The translations under genes and the position numbers were made by a program. Below, piece after piece: positions 1,232 through 8,111 of a DNA stretch of 64,000 nt. The stretch is taken from the sequence record NC_022096.1; one strand, given 5' to 3'. Every line of letters begins with the position of its first letter. The first letter of the stretch is position 1. Under the pieces are notes generated by a model. The model did no database searches. It was not told the origin of the DNA and was given only the letters and a program-made list of their open reading frames with translations.

Positions 1232-1879
1232 ATGAGCATTACCTACAAGTACGGAAACGGCAAGTTGATCGGCTACCGTTCCGTAGACAAGTTTCATGGT
1301 GGCCTGTCGTTCAAGTTTCATCCAGACGGCGGAGACTCGTTCGATCGGTTCATCGACAAGGGTTTGATTCTCGAAATCAAAACTCAGTACGGTGAGCAAA
1401 CGATCGCGCTGAAACGGAACGACTACCGCGTAGTTCCCGAGCTGTGGAACTGCACCACGCTGATTTTCCAGAGTAACGAGTTGGCGCGCTCGCTCCACCT
1501 TGCTCTCGACGTTGAAGGCTTCCTGCACGTTTCGACACACAGCACGGCGACCCTTGCCGCTGAGTTGGCGAGCACCATCACGCACCAGCTGGCAACACCG
1601 TTCATGAAGCGCAAGCAGATTGACGTGCATCTGCGTAGTGAGCCCAGCGTCATCGCGCATTCCATTCTTCGGTGCATCGGGCTCAACCGATTCGCACCCG
1701 GCATGGACGTCAAGACGTTCTACCAACAGCATACGCCAGAAGCAGCCTACTCTGCGCTGTGTGCGTGGCTGAGCAACAAAGACCTTCGCGTGAACTTCCT
1801 GCCGCATGATGGCACGAAGCGCGCCGCATTCGTTTCTCGCATTGGCGAGAATGTTTTGGAGTTCGCCGAACAGGCGTAA
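1232..1879 (+). CDS. hypothetical protein
   Basis: 215-aa ORF with GGAC before ATG; first gene after the class A motif. Confidence 0.7.
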   Translation: MSITYKYGNGKLIGYRSVDKFHGGLSFKFHPDGGDSFDRFIDKGLILEIKTQYGEQTIALKRNDYRVVPELWNCTTLIFQSNELARSLHLALDVEGFLHVSTHSTATLAAELASTITHQLATPFMKRKQIDVHLRSEPSVIAHSILRCIGLNRFAPGMDVKTFYQQHTPEAAYSALCAWLSNKDLRVNFLPHDGTKRAAFVSRIGENVLEFAEQA

Positions 1880-1895
1880 GCAAATAGGACCCATC

Positions 1896-2693
1896 ATGGC
1901 AGCCGTACGTAAACTATCCGACCTGAAAGAAGCTGGCTACAACCCGCGCGTCATCAGCAGCAAGCGCCTCAGCAACCTGCACAAGTCCATGACGACCTAC
2001 GGCGACCTGAGCGGCGTCGTGTTCAACGTCAAGACCAAGACCCTGATTTCCGGCCACCAGCGCCTCAAGCCGCTGCGTGATGCTGGCATCAAAGTCGAAA
2101 TCAAGACCAAGCCCATCACCGACAAGTTCGGCACTGTAGCCGAAGGCTACGTCGTCGCCAAGACCAGCGCCGGCGAGCTGCGCATCCCGTACCGCGAAGT
2201 ATCCTGGAGCGACAAGAAAGCCGAGTACGCTGCCAACATCGCTGCAAACGCTCACGGCGGTGACTTCGACCGCACCAAGCTCGGTACCCTGCTGGCTGCT
2301 CTGGAGAAGGGCAAGTCGTTCGACATCGACGTTCTGGGTCTCGATCCGTTGAGCGTGCGCAGCCTGATGCCGAAGATGCCGAACGTCGAAGGTAGCGGTG
2401 ACGATGACGGTGAATCGTTCCAAGAGTACGGCGAGGACAGCTTCGAGTTCGATCATCAGTGCCCGAAGTGCAAGTTCCAGTTCAACTCCAGCTCTGCAAG
2501 CAAGCCCAAGAAGGACAAGCCGCAACCCAAGGCGCCGAAGCTCGACGTGAAGAAGGCCAAAGCCGAAGTCAAAGCCAAGAAGATCAAGGCTGAGAAGAAG
2601 ACCGACAGCAAGGCCAAGTCCAGCGCCGCAAAAGAATCGCTGAAAAAAGCGAAGTCCAGTAAGCTCAAGGCCAAGATCAAGAAGGCCAAGTAA
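1896..2693 (+). CDS. ParB/Srx-like domain protein with CxxC and Lys-rich C-terminal tail
   Basis: YNPR...ISGHQRL ParB-N motif; CPKC; last ~60 aa Lys/Ala rich; AGGA RBS before ATG 1896. Confidence 0.75.
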   Translation: MAAVRKLSDLKEAGYNPRVISSKRLSNLHKSMTTYGDLSGVVFNVKTKTLISGHQRLKPLRDAGIKVEIKTKPITDKFGTVAEGYVVAKTSAGELRIPYREVSWSDKKAEYAANIAANAHGGDFDRTKLGTLLAALEKGKSFDIDVLGLDPLSVRSLMPKMPNVEGSGDDDGESFQEYGEDSFEFDHQCPKCKFQFNSSSASKPKKDKPQPKAPKLDVKKAKAEVKAKKIKAEKKTDSKAKSSAAKESLKKAKSSKLKAKIKKAK

Positions 2694-2704
2694 GTAGGTC
2701 AGCC

Positions 2705-3712
2705 ATGGAAAAGAAAATCGTCAAGATACCTTCGATGAAGAAGATCAACGCTCTTCCGAAGGCATTCAAAGGCATCAGTTCGTTCTCCGGTTGTGGCGGG
2801 AGCTCCACTGGTGTGAAGATGGCTGGCGTCCAAGTGCTGCTCGCAACCGAGTTCATCAAGCCAGCCATCGAAACCTACGAGAAGAACCACAAAGGCACCA
2901 TCGTCATCGGTGAAGACATTCGCAAGGTCGACTGGGAGTCGTGGCGCAAGGAGCTCAAGCTCAAGCGCGGCCAGCTGGACTTCTCCGAAGGCAGTCCGCC
3001 GTGCAAGTCCTTCTCGACCTCTGGCACTGGCAGTGACGACTGGGGCAAGGAGAAACTCTACTCTGAGAACGTCTACCAGCGCACCGATGACCTCTTCTAC
3101 GAGGAAATGCGCAAGCTGGAAGCGTTCATGCCCAAGGTCTTCGTCTGCGAGAACGTCAAGGGCATGGTTGAGGGTGACGCCAAGGGTTACTTCATCGAAA
3201 TCCTGCGTGACCTTAAAGCAATCGGGTATAGCGTGAAGGCGCAGGTGTTGAACGCTGCCCGTCTCGACGTACCCCAAGCCCGCGAGCGCGTGATCTTCGT
3301 TGGTGTGCGTAACGACTTGGTGAAGAAAGGCTTTGAGCCTGTGTTCCCCAAAGCGAAGCCGTACGAGGTGAACGTCAACGACGTCCTACCTCACATTGCG
3401 TACCTCAAGTCGAAGTACCGAGGCGACATCAAGTACGTCCCAGCTTCGATCCCGAGTCCTACGATCGTGGCGAGCGATGGTACCAACAGTGAGACTGCCG
3501 GCTTCTCGTCTGGCGGCTTCATTGAGACTGTCGATGGCGAGCGCCGCAAGTACACCATCGACGAGTTGAAGAAGATTTTCACCTTCCCGGATGACTTCAT
3601 CTTCACTGGTACCTACAAGCAGCAGTTCGAGCGTCTCGGCCGCTCAGTTCCGCCACTCATGATGTATCGCGTAGTCGCGGAGCTTCGCCGCCAGATTCTG
3701 GAGAAGCTGTAA
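2705..3712 (+). CDS. DNA cytosine-C5 methyltransferase family protein, candidate carboxymethyltransferase
   Basis: Motifs I FSGCGG, IV GSPPCKSFS, VI ENVKG, VIII QARERV, X GRSVPP (Asn replaced by Arg313). Confidence 0.93.
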   Translation: MEKKIVKIPSMKKINALPKAFKGISSFSGCGGSSTGVKMAGVQVLLATEFIKPAIETYEKNHKGTIVIGEDIRKVDWESWRKELKLKRGQLDFSEGSPPCKSFSTSGTGSDDWGKEKLYSENVYQRTDDLFYEEMRKLEAFMPKVFVCENVKGMVEGDAKGYFIEILRDLKAIGYSVKAQVLNAARLDVPQARERVIFVGVRNDLVKKGFEPVFPKAKPYEVNVNDVLPHIAYLKSKYRGDIKYVPASIPSPTIVASDGTNSETAGFSSGGFIETVDGERRKYTIDELKKIFTFPDDFIFTGTYKQQFERLGRSVPPLMMYRVVAELRRQILEKL

Positions 3713-3717
3713 CCCAA

Positions 3718-3740
3718 GGGAGTCTTCGGACTCCCTTTTT
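3718..3740 (+). terminator. rho-independent terminator
   Basis: GGGAGTC-TTCG-GACTCCC-TTTTT. Confidence 0.9.
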
Positions 3741-3750
3741 ATGGCCTCCG

Positions 3751-3773
3751 AAACTGTAAATCCACAGTATAAT
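3751..3773 (+). promoter_or_regulatory. putative phage promoter, class A (AAACTGTAAA-N7-TATAAT)
   Basis: Directly after the terminator, 20 nt before the cmoA-like ATG. Confidence 0.6.
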
Positions 3774-3793
3774 CCATTGGTTGGAGCCTAAAC

Positions 3794-4570
3794 ATGAGCC
3801 AAGAACCTGTAGTAGACAACCACGTCCCAGGCGAACGCTGGGAGTTCAACGAGGACGTAGCCAAGCAGTTCGACCTGATGCTGGAGAAGTCGATCCCCGG
3901 CTACGGACAGATGCGTGATCTGGTGTATCGCATCGGCAAGCGTTTCGTTCAGTCGCCGTCGAACGTCATCGATCTGGGTGCTAGCCGTGGTGAAGCCGTG
4001 GCGCGCTTTATCGCTGAGTTCCCGCACTCTGACTTCTTCCTCTCGGAAGTTTCCGAGCCAATGCTGGCTGAAATGCACGAGCGCTTTGCTGATCTGCCGA
4101 ACGTGTTTCCTGTGAGCTACGATCTGCGCAAGACGTCCGAGCAGATTGCCACAGCGATTCGTAATCCGAAGTTCGGCATGGCCCACGCTGGGCTGAACCC
4201 TGTTGCGTCGCACACTACGCTGGTGCTGTCTATTCTCACCATGATCTTCGTGCCCATCAACTTCCGCCCGAGCATCTACAAGGGCGTGTACGACGGACTG
4301 GCCCGCGGCGGCGCGTTCATCGTTGTCGAGAAGGTGCTTGGCAACTCCGCCGCCATGCAAGAGCTGCTGGTTGACGTGTACCACGAGTACAAGCACGACA
4401 ACGGCTACAGCTGGGAAGCCATCGAGCGCAAACGCGCCGCCCTCGAAGGCGTGCAAGTACCTGTGAGCCATGAGACCAACATCGATATGTTGCGTGCCGC
4501 TGGCTTCCGCAACGTCGAATCGTTCTGGCGCAACATGAATTTCGTGGCCTATCTGGCTATCAAGGATTAA
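3794..4570 (+). CDS. cmoA: CmoA-like carboxy-S-adenosyl-L-methionine synthase
   Basis: WEFNEDVAKQFDLMLEKSIPGY, IDLGASRG, GGAFIVVEK, KRAALEG (Arg214) and AGFRNVESFWRNMNF all match recalled CmoA blocks; GGAG RBS. Confidence 0.85.
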   Translation: MSQEPVVDNHVPGERWEFNEDVAKQFDLMLEKSIPGYGQMRDLVYRIGKRFVQSPSNVIDLGASRGEAVARFIAEFPHSDFFLSEVSEPMLAEMHERFADLPNVFPVSYDLRKTSEQIATAIRNPKFGMAHAGLNPVASHTTLVLSILTMIFVPINFRPSIYKGVYDGLARGGAFIVVEKVLGNSAAMQELLVDVYHEYKHDNGYSWEAIERKRAALEGVQVPVSHETNIDMLRAAGFRNVESFWRNMNFVAYLAIKD

Positions 4571-4572
4571 CG

Positions 4573-5025
4573 ATGCGTGAACTCAAGCTACTCCGCAAGC
4601 GCGTAAAGCAGGCTTGGGCGGCAGAAGCTGACCTGAGTCCGAATGAGCGAGAACTGCACCAGTGGCAGTTCCTGTCGATGCAGAGCAACGTGCCCTATGT
4701 CGTCGGTAAGGGTGCCGCCAACACGTTCTTCTATCGTGTCGGTACTACTGGTGAAATGACCTACGTGATGCCAGACGAAATGTTTGCCATCATGGACAAG
4801 TGGGTCAACTCTAGCTTTGCTTTGTTCGCCATCACCAAGACGCGCGACATCAAAGACGCCCCGTGCTCCACGGACATCAACGTCCTGCTGCAAAAGACGA
4901 AGGACAAGTACGTCGGTTATTTCATTGTCGGTATCACACCCGACCAGCGTGTAGTTCGCCTGCATGTATTGAAAAGCGGACTCCGCAAAAACCAATGGGT
5001 GCCCTTCAAGCCGAAGAAACGGTAA
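4573..5025 (+). CDS. hypothetical protein in the modification cluster
   Basis: 150-aa ORF starting 2 nt after the cmoA-like stop. Confidence 0.7.
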   Translation: MRELKLLRKRVKQAWAAEADLSPNERELHQWQFLSMQSNVPYVVGKGAANTFFYRVGTTGEMTYVMPDEMFAIMDKWVNSSFALFAITKTRDIKDAPCSTDINVLLQKTKDKYVGYFIVGITPDQRVVRLHVLKSGLRKNQWVPFKPKKR

Positions 5026-5034
5026 GGAAAGACA

Positions 5035-5859
5035 ATGGACCAGAAGACTCGTTCCAAGAAATTGCGCCGAGCGCTCGTTGCGCAGGCGAAGTCGGTGGGC
5101 GTCAAGAATGTAGCCGTTCCCATGAGCAGCGGTGTGGACAGTCACTGTGCGCTGTTCGCCTGCCTCGAAGCTGGGTTGAGCCCGCACGTCTACTCGTTCC
5201 ATCTGGACGGCGTTGAAAGCCGTGACGTGCGTGTCGCCGAGAAGACAGCGGAAGCCTTCGATCTGCCGTTCACCAAAGTGACGCTACCCAATGGCAAGAA
5301 GCAACTCATCAAGGACGTCATCGAGCTTGCCCGTTTCGGCTGCCGTAGCAAGACGGACTTCGAGTGCTTCTGGCCAATGTGGCACTTGCTGCCGAAGATC
5401 AAGCAGAAGGCTTTCTTCACCGGCCATGGTGCCGACAGCCTGTACTGCCTTAGCCGCAAAGCTGTTCAACACTACGCCGGCCGCGAAGATGAATTTCGTA
5501 GGCTGGCTTTCTCGTCCAACAAAGCCTTCCAGAAGGGCTTGATCGAGAAGTGGTGTGAGACTAAGGGCAAAGGCAAAATCTACTGCCCGATCTTCTTCAA
5601 CCAGCAGACGCTTGCAATCTTCCAAGGCGCCAAGCCTGCTGATCTGAACAAGCCGATCCAGAAAGCCGTGAGCCGCATGGCGTTCGAGGAATACTTCGAG
5701 CATGTGCGCGTCTACGTTCACCAACCTTTCCAGTTGGGTGACACCGGCATCAAGATCGGCTTCGAGCAGCATCTGCTGGACAGCGAACTCAACACCAAGT
5801 CCTACAAAAGCGTTGTCGGCATTTATAATGAGCTGGTGCGCAACTACGGGAAGAAGTGA
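5035..5859 (+). CDS. stand-alone asparagine-synthetase-like (PP-loop) ATP-dependent amide ligase
   Basis: VAVPMSSGVDS PP-loop and FFTGHGADSLY matching the AsnB synthetase-domain TGxGADE motif; no N-terminal glutaminase domain; AGGA RBS. Confidence 0.75.
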   Translation: MDQKTRSKKLRRALVAQAKSVGVKNVAVPMSSGVDSHCALFACLEAGLSPHVYSFHLDGVESRDVRVAEKTAEAFDLPFTKVTLPNGKKQLIKDVIELARFGCRSKTDFECFWPMWHLLPKIKQKAFFTGHGADSLYCLSRKAVQHYAGREDEFRRLAFSSNKAFQKGLIEKWCETKGKGKIYCPIFFNQQTLAIFQGAKPADLNKPIQKAVSRMAFEEYFEHVRVYVHQPFQLGDTGIKIGFEQHLLDSELNTKSYKSVVGIYNELVRNYGKK

Positions 5860-6473
5860 CCATGTTCATCCAAAACTATATCCACTACAAGACCGATCCC
5901 GCCTCGTGGGTGCTGAACACGCTGTTCCCGCTGACTGCGGAAGAGTACGGCGACCAGCAAGCTTGGCTCGATGCTGGAGCTCCAGACGAACCTCCGATGA
6001 CTCGCGTCCTGAATGCTGAGCAAGATCGACTGTTCAAGCTGGTACACAAGCACGCCAGTGACTACTACGCGCAGAACAAGCCGTACCTGAACTCCGTCGC
6101 AATCATGATGGCAATGACCGCGCTCTACGGTGAGCAGCAAGTTCTCGGCCATTCGTATCGCGGTGCATTCCTGTTTGCCGGCAACTGCGAAGCGATGTTC
6201 AGTCGTCTGGTGATGCAAGGTCAAGGTGCAATGGATTTCATGCGCTACAACCTTGCACAAGAAGTAACTGGTGACCCGATGCTCGCGGTAATTCGCGCCG
6301 AGCAACTGTGCCACAAGTACGGCCTGCGTAATCACCGCATGCCAACCGGTGACGGTACCGACATCGTGTTCAGCCTTGAGCCGATCGCCAACCCGGTGTT
6401 CGATAACGTCAAATACATTCCATCCGTCGCTGGCTACTATACCATCGTCGGCAAAGGTGCAGCGAGGGATTAA
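5856..6473 (+). CDS. hypothetical protein
   Basis: 205-aa ORF, GTGA overlap with the upstream stop (alternative ATG 5862). Confidence 0.7.
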   Translation: MTMFIQNYIHYKTDPASWVLNTLFPLTAEEYGDQQAWLDAGAPDEPPMTRVLNAEQDRLFKLVHKHASDYYAQNKPYLNSVAIMMAMTALYGEQQVLGHSYRGAFLFAGNCEAMFSRLVMQGQGAMDFMRYNLAQEVTGDPMLAVIRAEQLCHKYGLRNHRMPTGDGTDIVFSLEPIANPVFDNVKYIPSVAGYYTIVGKGAARD

Positions 6474-6475
6474 CC

Positions 6476-7537
6476 GTGGCCAAGAAAGACAAACTCAAGA
6501 AGAAAAAAGGTGATGTCAAGATCGATGTCACCGTCGAGAAGAAAAAGAAAAAGAAGGCGAAAGCCGAGGTAATGCCGATCGCGAAGGACAGCTACATCAT
6601 CGTTCGTGTCGGTAGCAAGCACAAGCTGGCACTCGCCATCAACCCGGAACGCGGTCGCGCTGTCATCGACGAAACTCTGGCGGACGACGAGCCACAGCAC
6701 ATCGAGTTCGACGAGAACAACCTGGTGTGCAACCTGGGCACCAAGCCCAAGGGTGGCGCTGCCTTCGGCGTGCGTATCGAACCCTACGTCTCCAGCGTCG
6801 AATCCAAGTACGGCCAGATGCACTTCTTCCGCGAGCTGGGTGACCTGGAGAAGAAAGCACTCAAGCGCGCACTGCGTCGCACCTACGACGGCATGCTGGA
6901 ACAGAACCTGAACGTCTTCCCGTTCACCCAGATGAAGATTACGCCGAAGCGCGGCAAGTACGCGGGTATGTATCTGTTCCGTCGCAAGTCTGGCGAGGTC
7001 TGGGATGCCGTTGTACTGCACCCGGAGACGTTCGAGGACACCAAGTTCAACGAGTACCTGCTGTACCACGAATACGGTCACGCTGTCTGGTACAAGATGA
7101 TCACTGCCAGCTACAAGGCCAAGTGGATCAAGCTCTACCACAAGCGCCTGGAGCTGATGAACATCCTGAAAGATCGTCTTGAGCCGATGCTGGACGAACT
7201 GCTCAAGTTCGCCGGCAGTCTCAAGGACTTCTACAAGGAACTCGAAGAGGAAGACCGCCTCGTGTTCCGTGAGGTGCTGTCGCACTACAAGCGCTACCAC
7301 AAGATGGATGGCTACTCGATGGACATCCTGCACATGGAAGACACTGAGAAGTTTGCTTCGATGTGGCCGAAGCGTGCAACTCTCGTTGAATCGCGCCCTG
7401 ACCTGAGCGAATATGCGATGGTCAAGCCTGAGGAGTTCTGGGCAGAAGCGTTTGCGTTCCACATGACTGGGCGCAAAATGCCCAAGGACATTACCAAAGC
7501 CATGGAGAAAACGCTGACTGCTTTGCAGAGCGTGTAG
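6476..7537 (+). CDS. putative zinc metallopeptidase (HExxH) with basic N-terminus
   Basis: YHEYGHAVW and downstream YAMVKPEEFWAEAF; N-terminal poly-Lys stretch. Confidence 0.6.
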   Translation: MAKKDKLKKKKGDVKIDVTVEKKKKKKAKAEVMPIAKDSYIIVRVGSKHKLALAINPERGRAVIDETLADDEPQHIEFDENNLVCNLGTKPKGGAAFGVRIEPYVSSVESKYGQMHFFRELGDLEKKALKRALRRTYDGMLEQNLNVFPFTQMKITPKRGKYAGMYLFRRKSGEVWDAVVLHPETFEDTKFNEYLLYHEYGHAVWYKMITASYKAKWIKLYHKRLELMNILKDRLEPMLDELLKFAGSLKDFYKELEEEDRLVFREVLSHYKRYHKMDGYSMDILHMEDTEKFASMWPKRATLVESRPDLSEYAMVKPEEFWAEAFAFHMTGRKMPKDITKAMEKTLTALQSV

Positions 7538-7547
7538 AGACTCCCAC

Positions 7548-8111
7548 ATGAACGACCTTGCGACGTTAAAGTCCCTAACCTCGATCAAGCCCATTGCTAC
7601 ATTGGGCAACACACCAGGCACCACCATGTTCAATCGTTTCTTCTTTGAGCGACTGAGCGCATTCGGCTCTGTGAAAAATGGCATCGTCCTGACGATTAAC
7701 GACGAAGCCTTTGAAGATGTAGAAGACTGGGGTGAGTTCATCCAGACCCCGATGGGTAACGTGACGGTTCGCCGTGCTGTTACCGAAGATGACCTGCAGA
7801 GTCTGAGTTTGCCGGGTATGGCCCATCTTCGTCATGCAGGCGTGCGCAATTTTGCTCGCCTGTTATCTGACGATGCCGTGATCTTTCGGTTTGAGACTGC
7901 GCGTTGGCAAGGCGTTGAGTATCCGATCGAGGAATTGAATCGGTACTTTGAAACCCTGCGTCGCGCTTATCACCTGAGTGACGAGGCTGGCATCATCGAC
8001 GTGCCGATTCAGCTCGGTAGTGTAAACCACCGATATACGACCAGAGCGCAGATTGAATCTGTCCTCTACCCAATGGCGTACTACTTTTTTCGAGAAGATA
8101 CGGAGCTCTAA
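7548..8111 (+). CDS. hypothetical protein
   Basis: 187-aa ORF tightly packed between neighbours. Confidence 0.65.
   Translation: MNDLATLKSLTSIKPIATLGNTPGTTMFNRFFFERLSAFGSVKNGIVLTINDEAFEDVEDWGEFIQTPMGNVTVRRAVTEDDLQSLSLPGMAHLRHAGVRNFARLLSDDAVIFRFETARWQGVEYPIEELNRYFETLRRAYHLSDEAGIIDVPIQLGSVNHRYTTRAQIESVLYPMAYYFFREDTEL

Follow-up and report, generated by a model that had tools for sequence, protein, structure and literature searches.

A predicted CmoA/CmoX/CmoY-type DNA hypermodification locus in Pseudomonas phage PaBG

Location and gene content of the locus

The analysed stretch of 64 kb (henceforth the window) belongs to Pseudomonas phage PaBG (Baikalvirus, myovirus, 258,139 bp; host P. aeruginosa PAO1), and the subject of this text is a group of six genes in it, of which PaBG_00176–00180 are likely to encode a CmoA/CmoX/CmoY-type pathway that hypermodifies the DNA of the phage itself after replication. 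Window positions 1800–6600 are 100% identical to positions 125800–130600 of the sequence record. The interval 1896–6473, to which an earlier note made from the sequence alone had assigned six adjacent genes, does hold six open reading frames (ORFs), all on the + strand, and these are the GenBank coding sequences PaBG_00176–00181 (Table 1). The genes are tightly packed, with 11 nt between the ParB-like gene and the CmoX homologue, 2 nt between the CmoA homologue and p150, 9 nt between p150 and the ligase gene, and a 4-nt overlap (or, with the GenBank start, a 2-nt gap) between the ligase gene and p205; the sole exception is a gap of 81 nt between the CmoX and CmoA homologues. The block within which the cluster sits contains genes for replication and repair, among them those for the clamp loader, SbcCD, Pol I, and helicases. 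The GC content of 0.53–0.60 across 2-kb segments and the 258-kb myovirus genome agree with the previous description of the source as a GC-rich jumbo-like myophage.

Table 1. Features of the PaBG locus (window coordinates) and the family match or reading on which each assignment is based
Feature	Position	Strand	Match or basis
ParB-like protein PaBG_00176, 265 aa	1896..2693	+	phrog_620, E 2.9e-38
CmoX homologue PaBG_00177, 335 aa	2705..3712	+	PF00145, E 1e-51
Terminator-like hairpin followed by a T-run	3716..3742	+	sequence reading, RNA fold
CmoA homologue PaBG_00178, 258 aa	3794..4570	+	TIGR00740, E 7.6e-38
p150, PaBG_00179, 150 aa	4573..5025	+	phrog_23597, function unnamed
CmoY-type amide ligase (predicted) PaBG_00180, 274 aa	5035..5859	+	PF00733, E 4.9e-6
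p205, PaBG_00181, 205 aa	5856..6473 (GenBank start 5862)	+	no family match

The CmoX and CmoA homologues

The reference system is the pathway reported by Yang et al. (Nat Commun 2025; PMC12783734), in which CmoA yields carboxy-S-adenosyl-L-methionine (Cx-SAM), CmoX uses it to form 5-carboxymethylcytosine (5cxmC), and CmoY converts 5cxmC to 5-glycyl-cxmC. The evidence for the pathway of Synechococcus phage S-B43, whose enzymes are called SpCmoA, SpCmoX, and SpCmoY, was obtained in vitro, in E. coli, and from the virion DNA of the phage (PMC12783734); this is the pathway of CmoA, carboxymethyltransferase and ligase to which the earlier note had referred.

PaBG_00177 has the fold and motifs of a C5-cytosine methyltransferase (PF00145; TIGR00675, 153.3 bits against a cut-off of 100.65). 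Its closest solved relative is SpCmoX (PDB 8YF3, E 5.4e-56), and this match beats that of the next methyltransferase (M.HaeIII, E 3.4e-22) by 34 orders of magnitude. All nine residues named for Cx-SAM binding or catalysis (PMC12783734) are kept: F27, E49, F50, and D71 correspond to SpCmoX F25, E47, F48, and D69, i.e., the contacts to the adenine and ribose of the cofactor; S97-P98-P99-C100 correspond to S95-P96-P97-C98, i.e., the SPPC motif with the catalytic Cys that served as selection criterion for CmoX in PMC12783734; and R313 in motif X (LGRSVPP), the Arg that had been noticed from the sequence before, aligns with SpCmoX R350 (VGRMVPP) in both HMMER and MAFFT alignments. In SpCmoX, R350 contacts the Cx-SAM carboxylate and replaces Asn304 of M.HhaI; the wild-type enzyme accepted Cx-SAM only, and the R350N variant accepted neither cofactor (PMC12783734). 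A basic residue in place of the motif-X Asn also permits Cx-SAM use in the engineered M.MpeI N374K, as far as this enzyme is described where PMC12783734 cites it; according to the same description, M.MpeI N374K is a laboratory mutant targeting CG, whereas the PaBG protein is natural and carries Arg. The region between motifs VIII and IX of PaBG_00177 did not align to SpCmoX and is about 37 residues shorter. Since this variable (target-recognition) region fails to align, the GC target of SpCmoX is not transferable to PaBG_00177. The CmoA gene follows 3' of PaBG_00177, and this linkage is kept in relatives. Taken together, the residues and the setting support the prediction that PaBG_00177 is a Cx-SAM-using DNA cytosine C5-carboxymethyltransferase.

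The top NCBIfam match of PaBG_00178 was TIGR00740 (CmoA, 130.5 bits), and the closest structures were the CmoA entries 1IM8 (E 4.5e-26) and 4GEK (E 2.2e-25), followed by a generic S-adenosyl-L-methionine (SAM) methyltransferase at 2.9e-11, in line with the earlier description as a CmoA-like enzyme. PaBG_00178 shares 30% of its residues with E. coli CmoA and 29–31% with SpCmoA, and the N-terminal and NGYS...KR blocks are conserved. These matches support the assignment of PaBG_00178 as a predicted carboxy-S-adenosyl-L-methionine synthase, which would convert SAM and prephenate to Cx-SAM.

CmoB is the tRNA enzyme that consumes Cx-SAM. A tblastn search with E. coli CmoB gave no match in PaBG, and no tRNA genes were found within the 64-kb window. 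The sole CmoB match in the phage collection was OR851014.1 (3,445 bp, “Salmonella phage S.Kent 1-2-1”), 93.5% identical over the full length; by its sequence, this record looks like a host chromosome fragment and not phage DNA.

The ligase

PaBG_00180 passes the gathering cut-off of PF00733 (26.9 bits against 21 bits). Its match to TIGR01536 is confined to the synthetase part (profile positions 234–368 of 517), and hence the protein is without a glutaminase domain. The PP-loop reads SSGVDS, with S31, G33, D35, and S36 invariant across nine CmoY-type ligases, the alignment of which contains 28 invariant columns. The single sequence gave no PDB match; AsnB was reached only with a profile built from the nine orthologues (1CT9 residues 206–438, E 1e-7; further matches 1JGT, 6.5e-6, and 3BL5, 1.7e-6). 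Both results bear out the reading of the protein as a glutaminase-less ligase of the AsnB type. PaBG_00180 is 33% identical to SpCmoY over residues 18–263 in a search of the whole phage collection (E 4e-27) and 31% identical in the multiple alignment, with about 90% of the length aligned and a pairwise E of 1e-33.

The SGxDS PP-loop and the synthetase-domain homology are shared with AsnB, beta-lactam synthetase, and QueC, and the chemistry expected of PaBG_00180, as of AsnB-type enzymes, would be formation of an acyl-adenylate and then of an amide. Unlike AsnB, the protein has no glutaminase domain and is about half as long, and its predicted acyl substrate is a DNA base. SpCmoY, likewise AsnB-type without a glutaminase domain, joins glycine to 5cxmC in DNA with ATP (PMC12783734). 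The classification of PaBG_00180 as a CmoY-type ATP-dependent ligase, predicted to adenylate the 5cxmC carboxylate and to couple it to an amine, is thus supported.

The ParB-like protein, p150, and p205

PaBG_00176 has a putative domain of the ParB/Srx type at its N-terminus, in which a GHQR box is found; a CPKC element is conserved, and the C-terminal tail is rich in lysine. The PHROG that it matches is named “ParB-like partition protein”, and a profile of six orthologues aligned weakly to Spo0J residues 6–72 (E 0.09), with GHQR opposite GERR. Both in PaBG-like loci and in Erwinia phage pEa_SNUABM_30, CmoX is immediately preceded by this gene, which is missing together with CmoX in one PaBG-like locus of deviating gene content (L013, Table 2). 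Phage ParB-like proteins activate a neighbouring thymine dioxygenase (5mYOX) specifically on duplex DNA (O'Toole et al., PNAS 2026; PMC13229309). As in this pair, the small ParB-like gene of PaBG stands beside an enzyme predicted to modify DNA bases post-replicatively, the partner being an Fe/2-oxoglutarate (2OG) dioxygenase in the 5mYOX/ParB case and a C5-methyltransferase homologue in PaBG. By analogy, the probable role of PaBG_00176 is to load CmoX onto duplex DNA or to activate it there. The last 70 residues of PaBG_00176 (about 2480–2693) are rich in Lys, Ala, and Ser and resemble histone H1; such a tail occurs in PaBG, L006, L009, and L010 and is absent from the L011 and Erwinia orthologues.

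Of the PaBG-like Cmo loci checked, all but L010 and L008 have p150 (PaBG_00179) directly 3' of CmoA, and a homologue lies near CmoA in 51 records of Erwinia, Dickeya, and Yersinia jumbo phages. L013 has neither p150 nor CmoA, CmoX, or ParB at the corresponding position. From this covariation, p150 probably belongs to the carboxymethylation module as its fourth component, accessory to CmoA/CmoX. Pfam and NCBIfam gave no match, and in PHROGs the protein belongs to an unnamed family. An AlphaFold2 (AF2) model with a predicted local distance difference test score (pLDDT) of 82.5 had no significant PDB match (best E 0.32), and the search of BFVD returned only p150 itself. A chorismate-mutase-like role in prephenate supply was considered and found no fold match in its support; likewise, the JGI name “YwqK antitoxin” given to a p150 homologue is not backed by any domain match.

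No family was found for p205 (PaBG_00181) in Pfam, PHROGs, or NCBIfam. The p205 family is rare, with 22 representative clusters among 1.84 billion proteins, and shares a conserved C-terminus (FDNxxYIPxxxGYYxIVGxGxARD); an alignment of 27 sequences was too diverse for a pattern search. The AF2 model is of good quality (pLDDT 88.5, predicted template modelling score 0.82) and had no PDB match (best E 0.21). A homologue is kept in L013 and missing from the Cmo loci L010 and L011; a distant member in L012 has replication genes, and no Cmo genes, in its vicinity; and p205 showed no similarity to the 203-aa gene 3' of the ligase in pEa_SNUABM_30. Because p205 stays with the phage backbone in L013, its membership in the pathway is doubtful, and judged from these occurrences it is probably not pathway-specific. 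A role of p205 as partner of the ligase, considered on account of the 4-nt overlap, was rejected as the main reading, as p205 follows p150 and not the ligase in L006 and L015 and persists in L013 without CmoX or CmoA. Regarding the start of p205, both GTG 5856, which overlaps the ligase stop by 4 nt, and ATG 5862, which is the GenBank start, are available; orthologues align from the first residues (MTM... vs MT...), which is compatible with a start at 5856.

Occurrence in the phage collection and in jumbo phages of enterobacteria

Among 50,697 phage records, 70 contained a CmoA homologue, 123 a CmoX-like gene, and 58 the ligase. The three genes occur together in several unrelated phage lineages, and the gene set recurs in Erwinia/Dickeya/Yersinia jumbo phages, cyanophages, one Staphylococcus phage, and one Streptomyces phage. 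The association of CmoA, CmoX, and ligase is not by chance.

Jumbo phages of the Alexandravirus type, e.g., pEa_SNUABM_30, vB_EamM_Alexandra, Y3, Yoloswag, vB_DsoM_AD1, and fHe-Yen9-02 (hosts Erwinia, Dickeya, Yersinia), are the only other cultured phages in which p150 was found. Their homologues of the PaBG proteins are 43% (ParB), 47–50% (CmoX), 42% (CmoA), 24–43% (ligase), and 34% (p150) identical, and no p205 homologue was detected in them, unlike in PaBG. Their genes are split between two sites, CmoA-ligase-...-p150 and ParB-CmoX, with about 15 kb in between, whereas those of PaBG are contiguous. At least three divergent ligase subtypes occur within this phage group. In addition, the CmoX of these phages is interrupted by an intein. 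Both the CmoX of the Erwinia jumbo phages (709 aa; pEa_SNUABM_30, L004:2728-4857, MZ443778 29727-31856) and that of the metagenomic locus L011 (766 aa; L011:5053-7353) are split by an intein of about 350–430 aa, the insertion point of which is precisely the catalytic Cys of SPPC (...GSPPC / intein ...VVHN / CKGFST...); matches to the Pfam families Hint and Intein_splicing were recorded for the L011 copy.

Comparison of PaBG-like loci

About 12 PaBG-like metagenomic loci, reached via homologues of p150, the ligase, and p205, were compared (Table 2); searches for related loci with single proteins had returned only PaBG itself. The backbone proteins of these loci (TnsA-like endonuclease, metalloprotease, clamp loader) are 50–87% identical to those of PaBG. 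L019–L024 are near-identical loci from six metagenomes. The gene set was syntenic in these loci, in addition to its co-occurrence in unrelated phage lineages.

Table 2. Gene order in PaBG and PaBG-like loci; percentages give the identity of the ligase to PaBG_00180
Locus	Genes in order
PaBG, L009, L019–L024	ParB, CmoX, CmoA, p150, ligase (76–82%), p205-like
L006, L011	ParB, CmoX, DUF1611, ligase (40–44%), CmoA, p150
L015, L016	ParB, CmoX, ligase (35%), 2OG-Fe(II)-oxygenase-like, CmoA, p150, p205-like
L010	ParB, ligase (38%), GNAT-like (weak match), arginase-family, CmoX, short DUF1611, CmoA, ..., p150
L013	thymidylate-synthase-like, pyridoxal-phosphate(PLP)-enzyme-like, 506-aa unknown, ligase (74–75%), p205-like

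In L013, other genes occupy the position of ParB-CmoX-CmoA-p150 of PaBG. As these four genes are jointly present in the Cmo loci and jointly absent at this position in L013, they were regarded as one module. Ligase identity falls to 31–44% between sister phages in which CmoX is 80–89% identical to that of PaBG, the exception among the sister CmoX proteins being the intein-bearing L011 copy at about 53%. By its distribution over these sequences, the ligase is an exchangeable cassette, and the accessory enzymes beside it differ from subtype to subtype; in PaBG it takes its minimal form, with no extra recognisable accessory enzyme. The covariation of ParB, CmoX, CmoA, and p150 as a module and the exchange of the ligase as a cassette with differing accessory enzymes are what is new here, together with the finding that p205 goes with the phage backbone.

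The genes found beside the ligase are a DUF1611 gene in L006:7174-8250 and L011:7366-8445 (PF07755, E 5.5e-49), an arginase-family gene (PF00491, E 1.3e-43) with a weakly matching GNAT-like neighbour in L010:4481-5994 and 7037-7681, and a 2OG-Fe(II)-oxygenase-like gene in L015:5886-6557 (phrog_61, E 1.4e-26). In L013:3606-8155, on a contig of 28.8 kb from Logan (SRR31240788), the thymidylate-synthase-like gene matched PF00303 at E 1.7e-5 and the PLP-enzyme-like gene matched phrog_7093 at E 3e-26.

The varying ligase-side genes of the PaBG relatives suggest several different final adducts on 5cxmC, and L013 may encode another pathway of pyrimidine hypermodification, with the amidation step in common.

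Proposed pathway

The genes PaBG_00176–00180 are probably a system by which the phage modifies its own DNA after replication. From the observed family memberships and conserved residues, we infer the activities, target, amine, and protective role as follows. CmoA would convert host SAM and prephenate to Cx-SAM. In CmoX, Cys100 would attack C6 of a flipped-out cytosine and the carboxymethyl group of Cx-SAM would be transferred to C5, with Arg313 holding the Cx-SAM carboxylate, so as to give 5cxmC at a short target sequence; the ParB-like protein would, by analogy, load or activate CmoX on duplex DNA. The ligase would then adenylate the carboxylate of 5cxmC with ATP and couple it to an amine, candidates being glycine or another small cellular amine, which would give a 5-(carbamoylmethyl)cytosine derivative. 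The p150 protein would act in the pathway as a conserved companion of CmoA. Phage DNA modified in this way would be expected to withstand restriction enzymes and other defences that target DNA. The sequence of steps from Cx-SAM via 5cxmC to an amide that the earlier note had put forward is thus supported, in that PaBG encodes homologues of all three S-B43 enzymes with the named residues kept.

Several points weigh against this assignment. The CmoA score of PaBG_00178 lies below the curated TIGR00740 cut-off of 193.3 bits; the biochemically verified SpCmoA, however, reaches only 115.6 bits, lower than PaBG_00178, and the cut-off hence excludes true phage CmoAs and is uninformative there. The pairwise E of 1e-33 between PaBG_00180 and SpCmoY, at 31–33% identity, is weaker than the network edge threshold of 1e-56 used in PMC12783734; because the similarity falls below this threshold, the amine of SpCmoY is not transferable to PaBG_00180. 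A ligase 74–75% identical to PaBG_00180 occurs in L013 without CmoX and CmoA at the equivalent position, and because it adjoins thymidylate-synthase-like and PLP-enzyme-like genes, the PaBG ligase subtype may lack specificity for 5cxmC. The Pfam family ParBc (PF02195) did not match PaBG_00176 at E ≤ 0.01, and the role proposed for this protein is an analogy with a different enzyme family. Finally, the PaBG literature found contains no mention of DNA modification, DNA composition, or restriction resistance. Comparative literature on jumbo phages likewise gave nothing on DNA modification in PaBG.

A more specific reading of the comparison is put forward as a tentative proposal, to be taken as a whole and less probable than the pathway itself. 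PaBG-like phages might combine a fixed installer (ParB, CmoX, CmoA, and an obligatory p150) with an exchangeable decorator cassette of ligase subtypes; the decorator subtypes would be accompanied by genes of the DUF1611, arginase-family, GNAT-like, or 2OG-oxygenase kinds; the PaBG ligase would add an amine other than glycine, and its subtype would also serve the thymidylate-synthase-based pathway of L013. If this were true, the PaBG ligase would be a portable amidation module shared by two base-modification chemistries. An installer that is near-identical among sister phages, with the ligase and accessory genes swapped, is the expected look of diversifying selection on the final adduct, and the pattern points to a set of further cytosine amides.

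Alternative explanations

The best-surviving alternative, although improbable in our assessment, is that the ligase, with or without p205, serves amidation in general as a portable module, has no dedication to 5cxmC, and may act in PaBG on another carboxylate (e.g., that of a nucleotide, a small molecule, or a different modified base), so that the phage DNA would carry plain 5cxmC or some other product. L013 speaks for it, as its backbone is PaBG-like (TnsA-like endonuclease 69%, metalloprotease 66%, clamp loader 66%) and the closely related ligase, together with a p205 homologue, stands behind the thymidylate-synthase-like, PLP-enzyme-like, and 506-aa genes, and so does the free swapping of ligase subtypes among close relatives. 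On the other hand, three of the four distinct phage types found with this subtype (PaBG; L009; L019–L024) have it directly behind CmoA-p150, the only characterised member of the family acts on 5cxmC in DNA (PMC12783734), and only 18 kb of the L013 phage are known, so that CmoX and CmoA could lie elsewhere, cf. the 15-kb split in the Erwinia phages.

It is very unlikely that PaBG_00177 is an ordinary SAM-dependent 5-methylcytosine (5mC) methylase directed against host restriction and PaBG_00178 a CmoA for the uridine 5-oxyacetic acid (cmo5U) of host tRNA, with their adjacency being coincidental. The GenBank labels (“DNA cytosine methylase”, “tRNA (cmo5U34)-methyltransferase”) read this way, and all general C5-methyltransferase motifs are present in PaBG_00177. 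Against it stand Arg313 at the motif-X site, which is Asn in HhaI-type enzymes and the Arg of which contacts the Cx-SAM carboxylate in SpCmoX, the position of SpCmoX as by far the nearest solved relative, the lack of a CmoB match in PaBG, and the recurrence of the CmoA-CmoX linkage in unrelated phage lineages. Were PaBG DNA to contain only 5mC or plain cytosine, this would cast doubt on predicting CmoX function by sequence from the Arg.

That the genes are remnants, unexpressed or inactive in PaBG, and that its DNA is unmodified, has just as slim a chance, for although the literature search found no data on PaBG expression or DNA composition, all ORFs are intact with conserved catalytic motifs, and orthologues in several environmental relatives are 70–89% identical with the order preserved, which argues for purifying selection.

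Relation to known systems

Like S-B43, PaBG has the three enzyme families CmoA, CmoX, and CmoY side by side; its CmoX keeps the SPPC motif, the Cx-SAM contacts, and the Arg, its ligase is without a glutaminase domain, and no CmoB was found in PaBG. The identities to the S-B43 proteins are low (CmoX 35%; CmoA and ligase as given above), and the gene order differs (CmoA-CmoY-CmoX in S-B43 vs ParB-CmoX / CmoA-p150-ligase in PaBG). Homologues of p150, p205, or ParB are absent from the 12.7 kb of S-B43 examined, unlike in PaBG. The two phages also differ in kind, one being a Pseudomonas jumbo phage and the other a marine cyanophage from the family Kyanoviridae. With respect to the tRNA cmo5U34 pathway of E. 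coli (CmoA/CmoB), PaBG_00178 is homologous to CmoA and presumably makes the same cofactor, Cx-SAM, whereas PaBG has no CmoB and its predicted Cx-SAM consumer is a DNA C5-methyltransferase homologue; for this reason, DNA cytosine and not tRNA uridine is the predicted substrate.

PaBG is a culturable member of an already published kind of system, and the mechanism is not new. The novelty seen in the earlier note was overstated, since PMC12783734 already predicts the system in thousands of phage contigs (5,615 CmoX, 4,257 CmoA, and 2,251 ligases), with ParBc neighbours in 1,660 of them, comparable to the ParB-like neighbour in PaBG, and with ligase clusters having non-glycine pockets. PaBG, Pseudomonas, and the word “jumbo” are absent from the text and supplements of that paper, the source data of which were covered only in part, and the literature search gave no further paper on natural CmoX. 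To date, one marine cyanophage has been shown to carry out the chemistry that leads to 5cxmC and its glycine amide. PaBG on PAO1, a laboratory strain with rich genetics and well-mapped defence systems, would be a practical model for CmoX-type systems, suited to questions on the role of the ParB-like protein, the need for p150, non-glycine amines, and the defences defeated.

Transcription signals and neighbouring genes

The hairpin in the gap between the CmoX and CmoA homologues (Table 1) has a 9-bp stem and a predicted folding energy of −15.2 kcal/mol (z = −2.6 against shuffles), and a TATAAT hexamer lies 3' of it at about 3768–3773. A scan for promoter and terminator consensus sequences found no more of them than shuffled sequence contains, and this hairpin was not among its results. 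By their sequence, the hairpin and the TATAAT region may mark the boundary between two transcription units; the two halves so separated (ParB-CmoX and CmoA onward) correspond to the groups that lie about 15 kb apart in pEa_SNUABM_30.

Downstream of p205, PaBG_00182 (6476–7537; GenBank start 6572) carries an HExxH motif (YHEYGH) and matches phrog_17197 (“peptidase”). It is kept at 50–82% identity in all PaBG-like loci that contain the position, including L013, and was therefore regarded as a backbone gene outside the modification system. Upstream, PaBG_00174 (629–1192; GenBank start 689), which encodes a TnsA/Vsr-like endonuclease (DUF7487, E 4.9e-14), forms the edge of the variable position in most PaBG-like loci, including L013.

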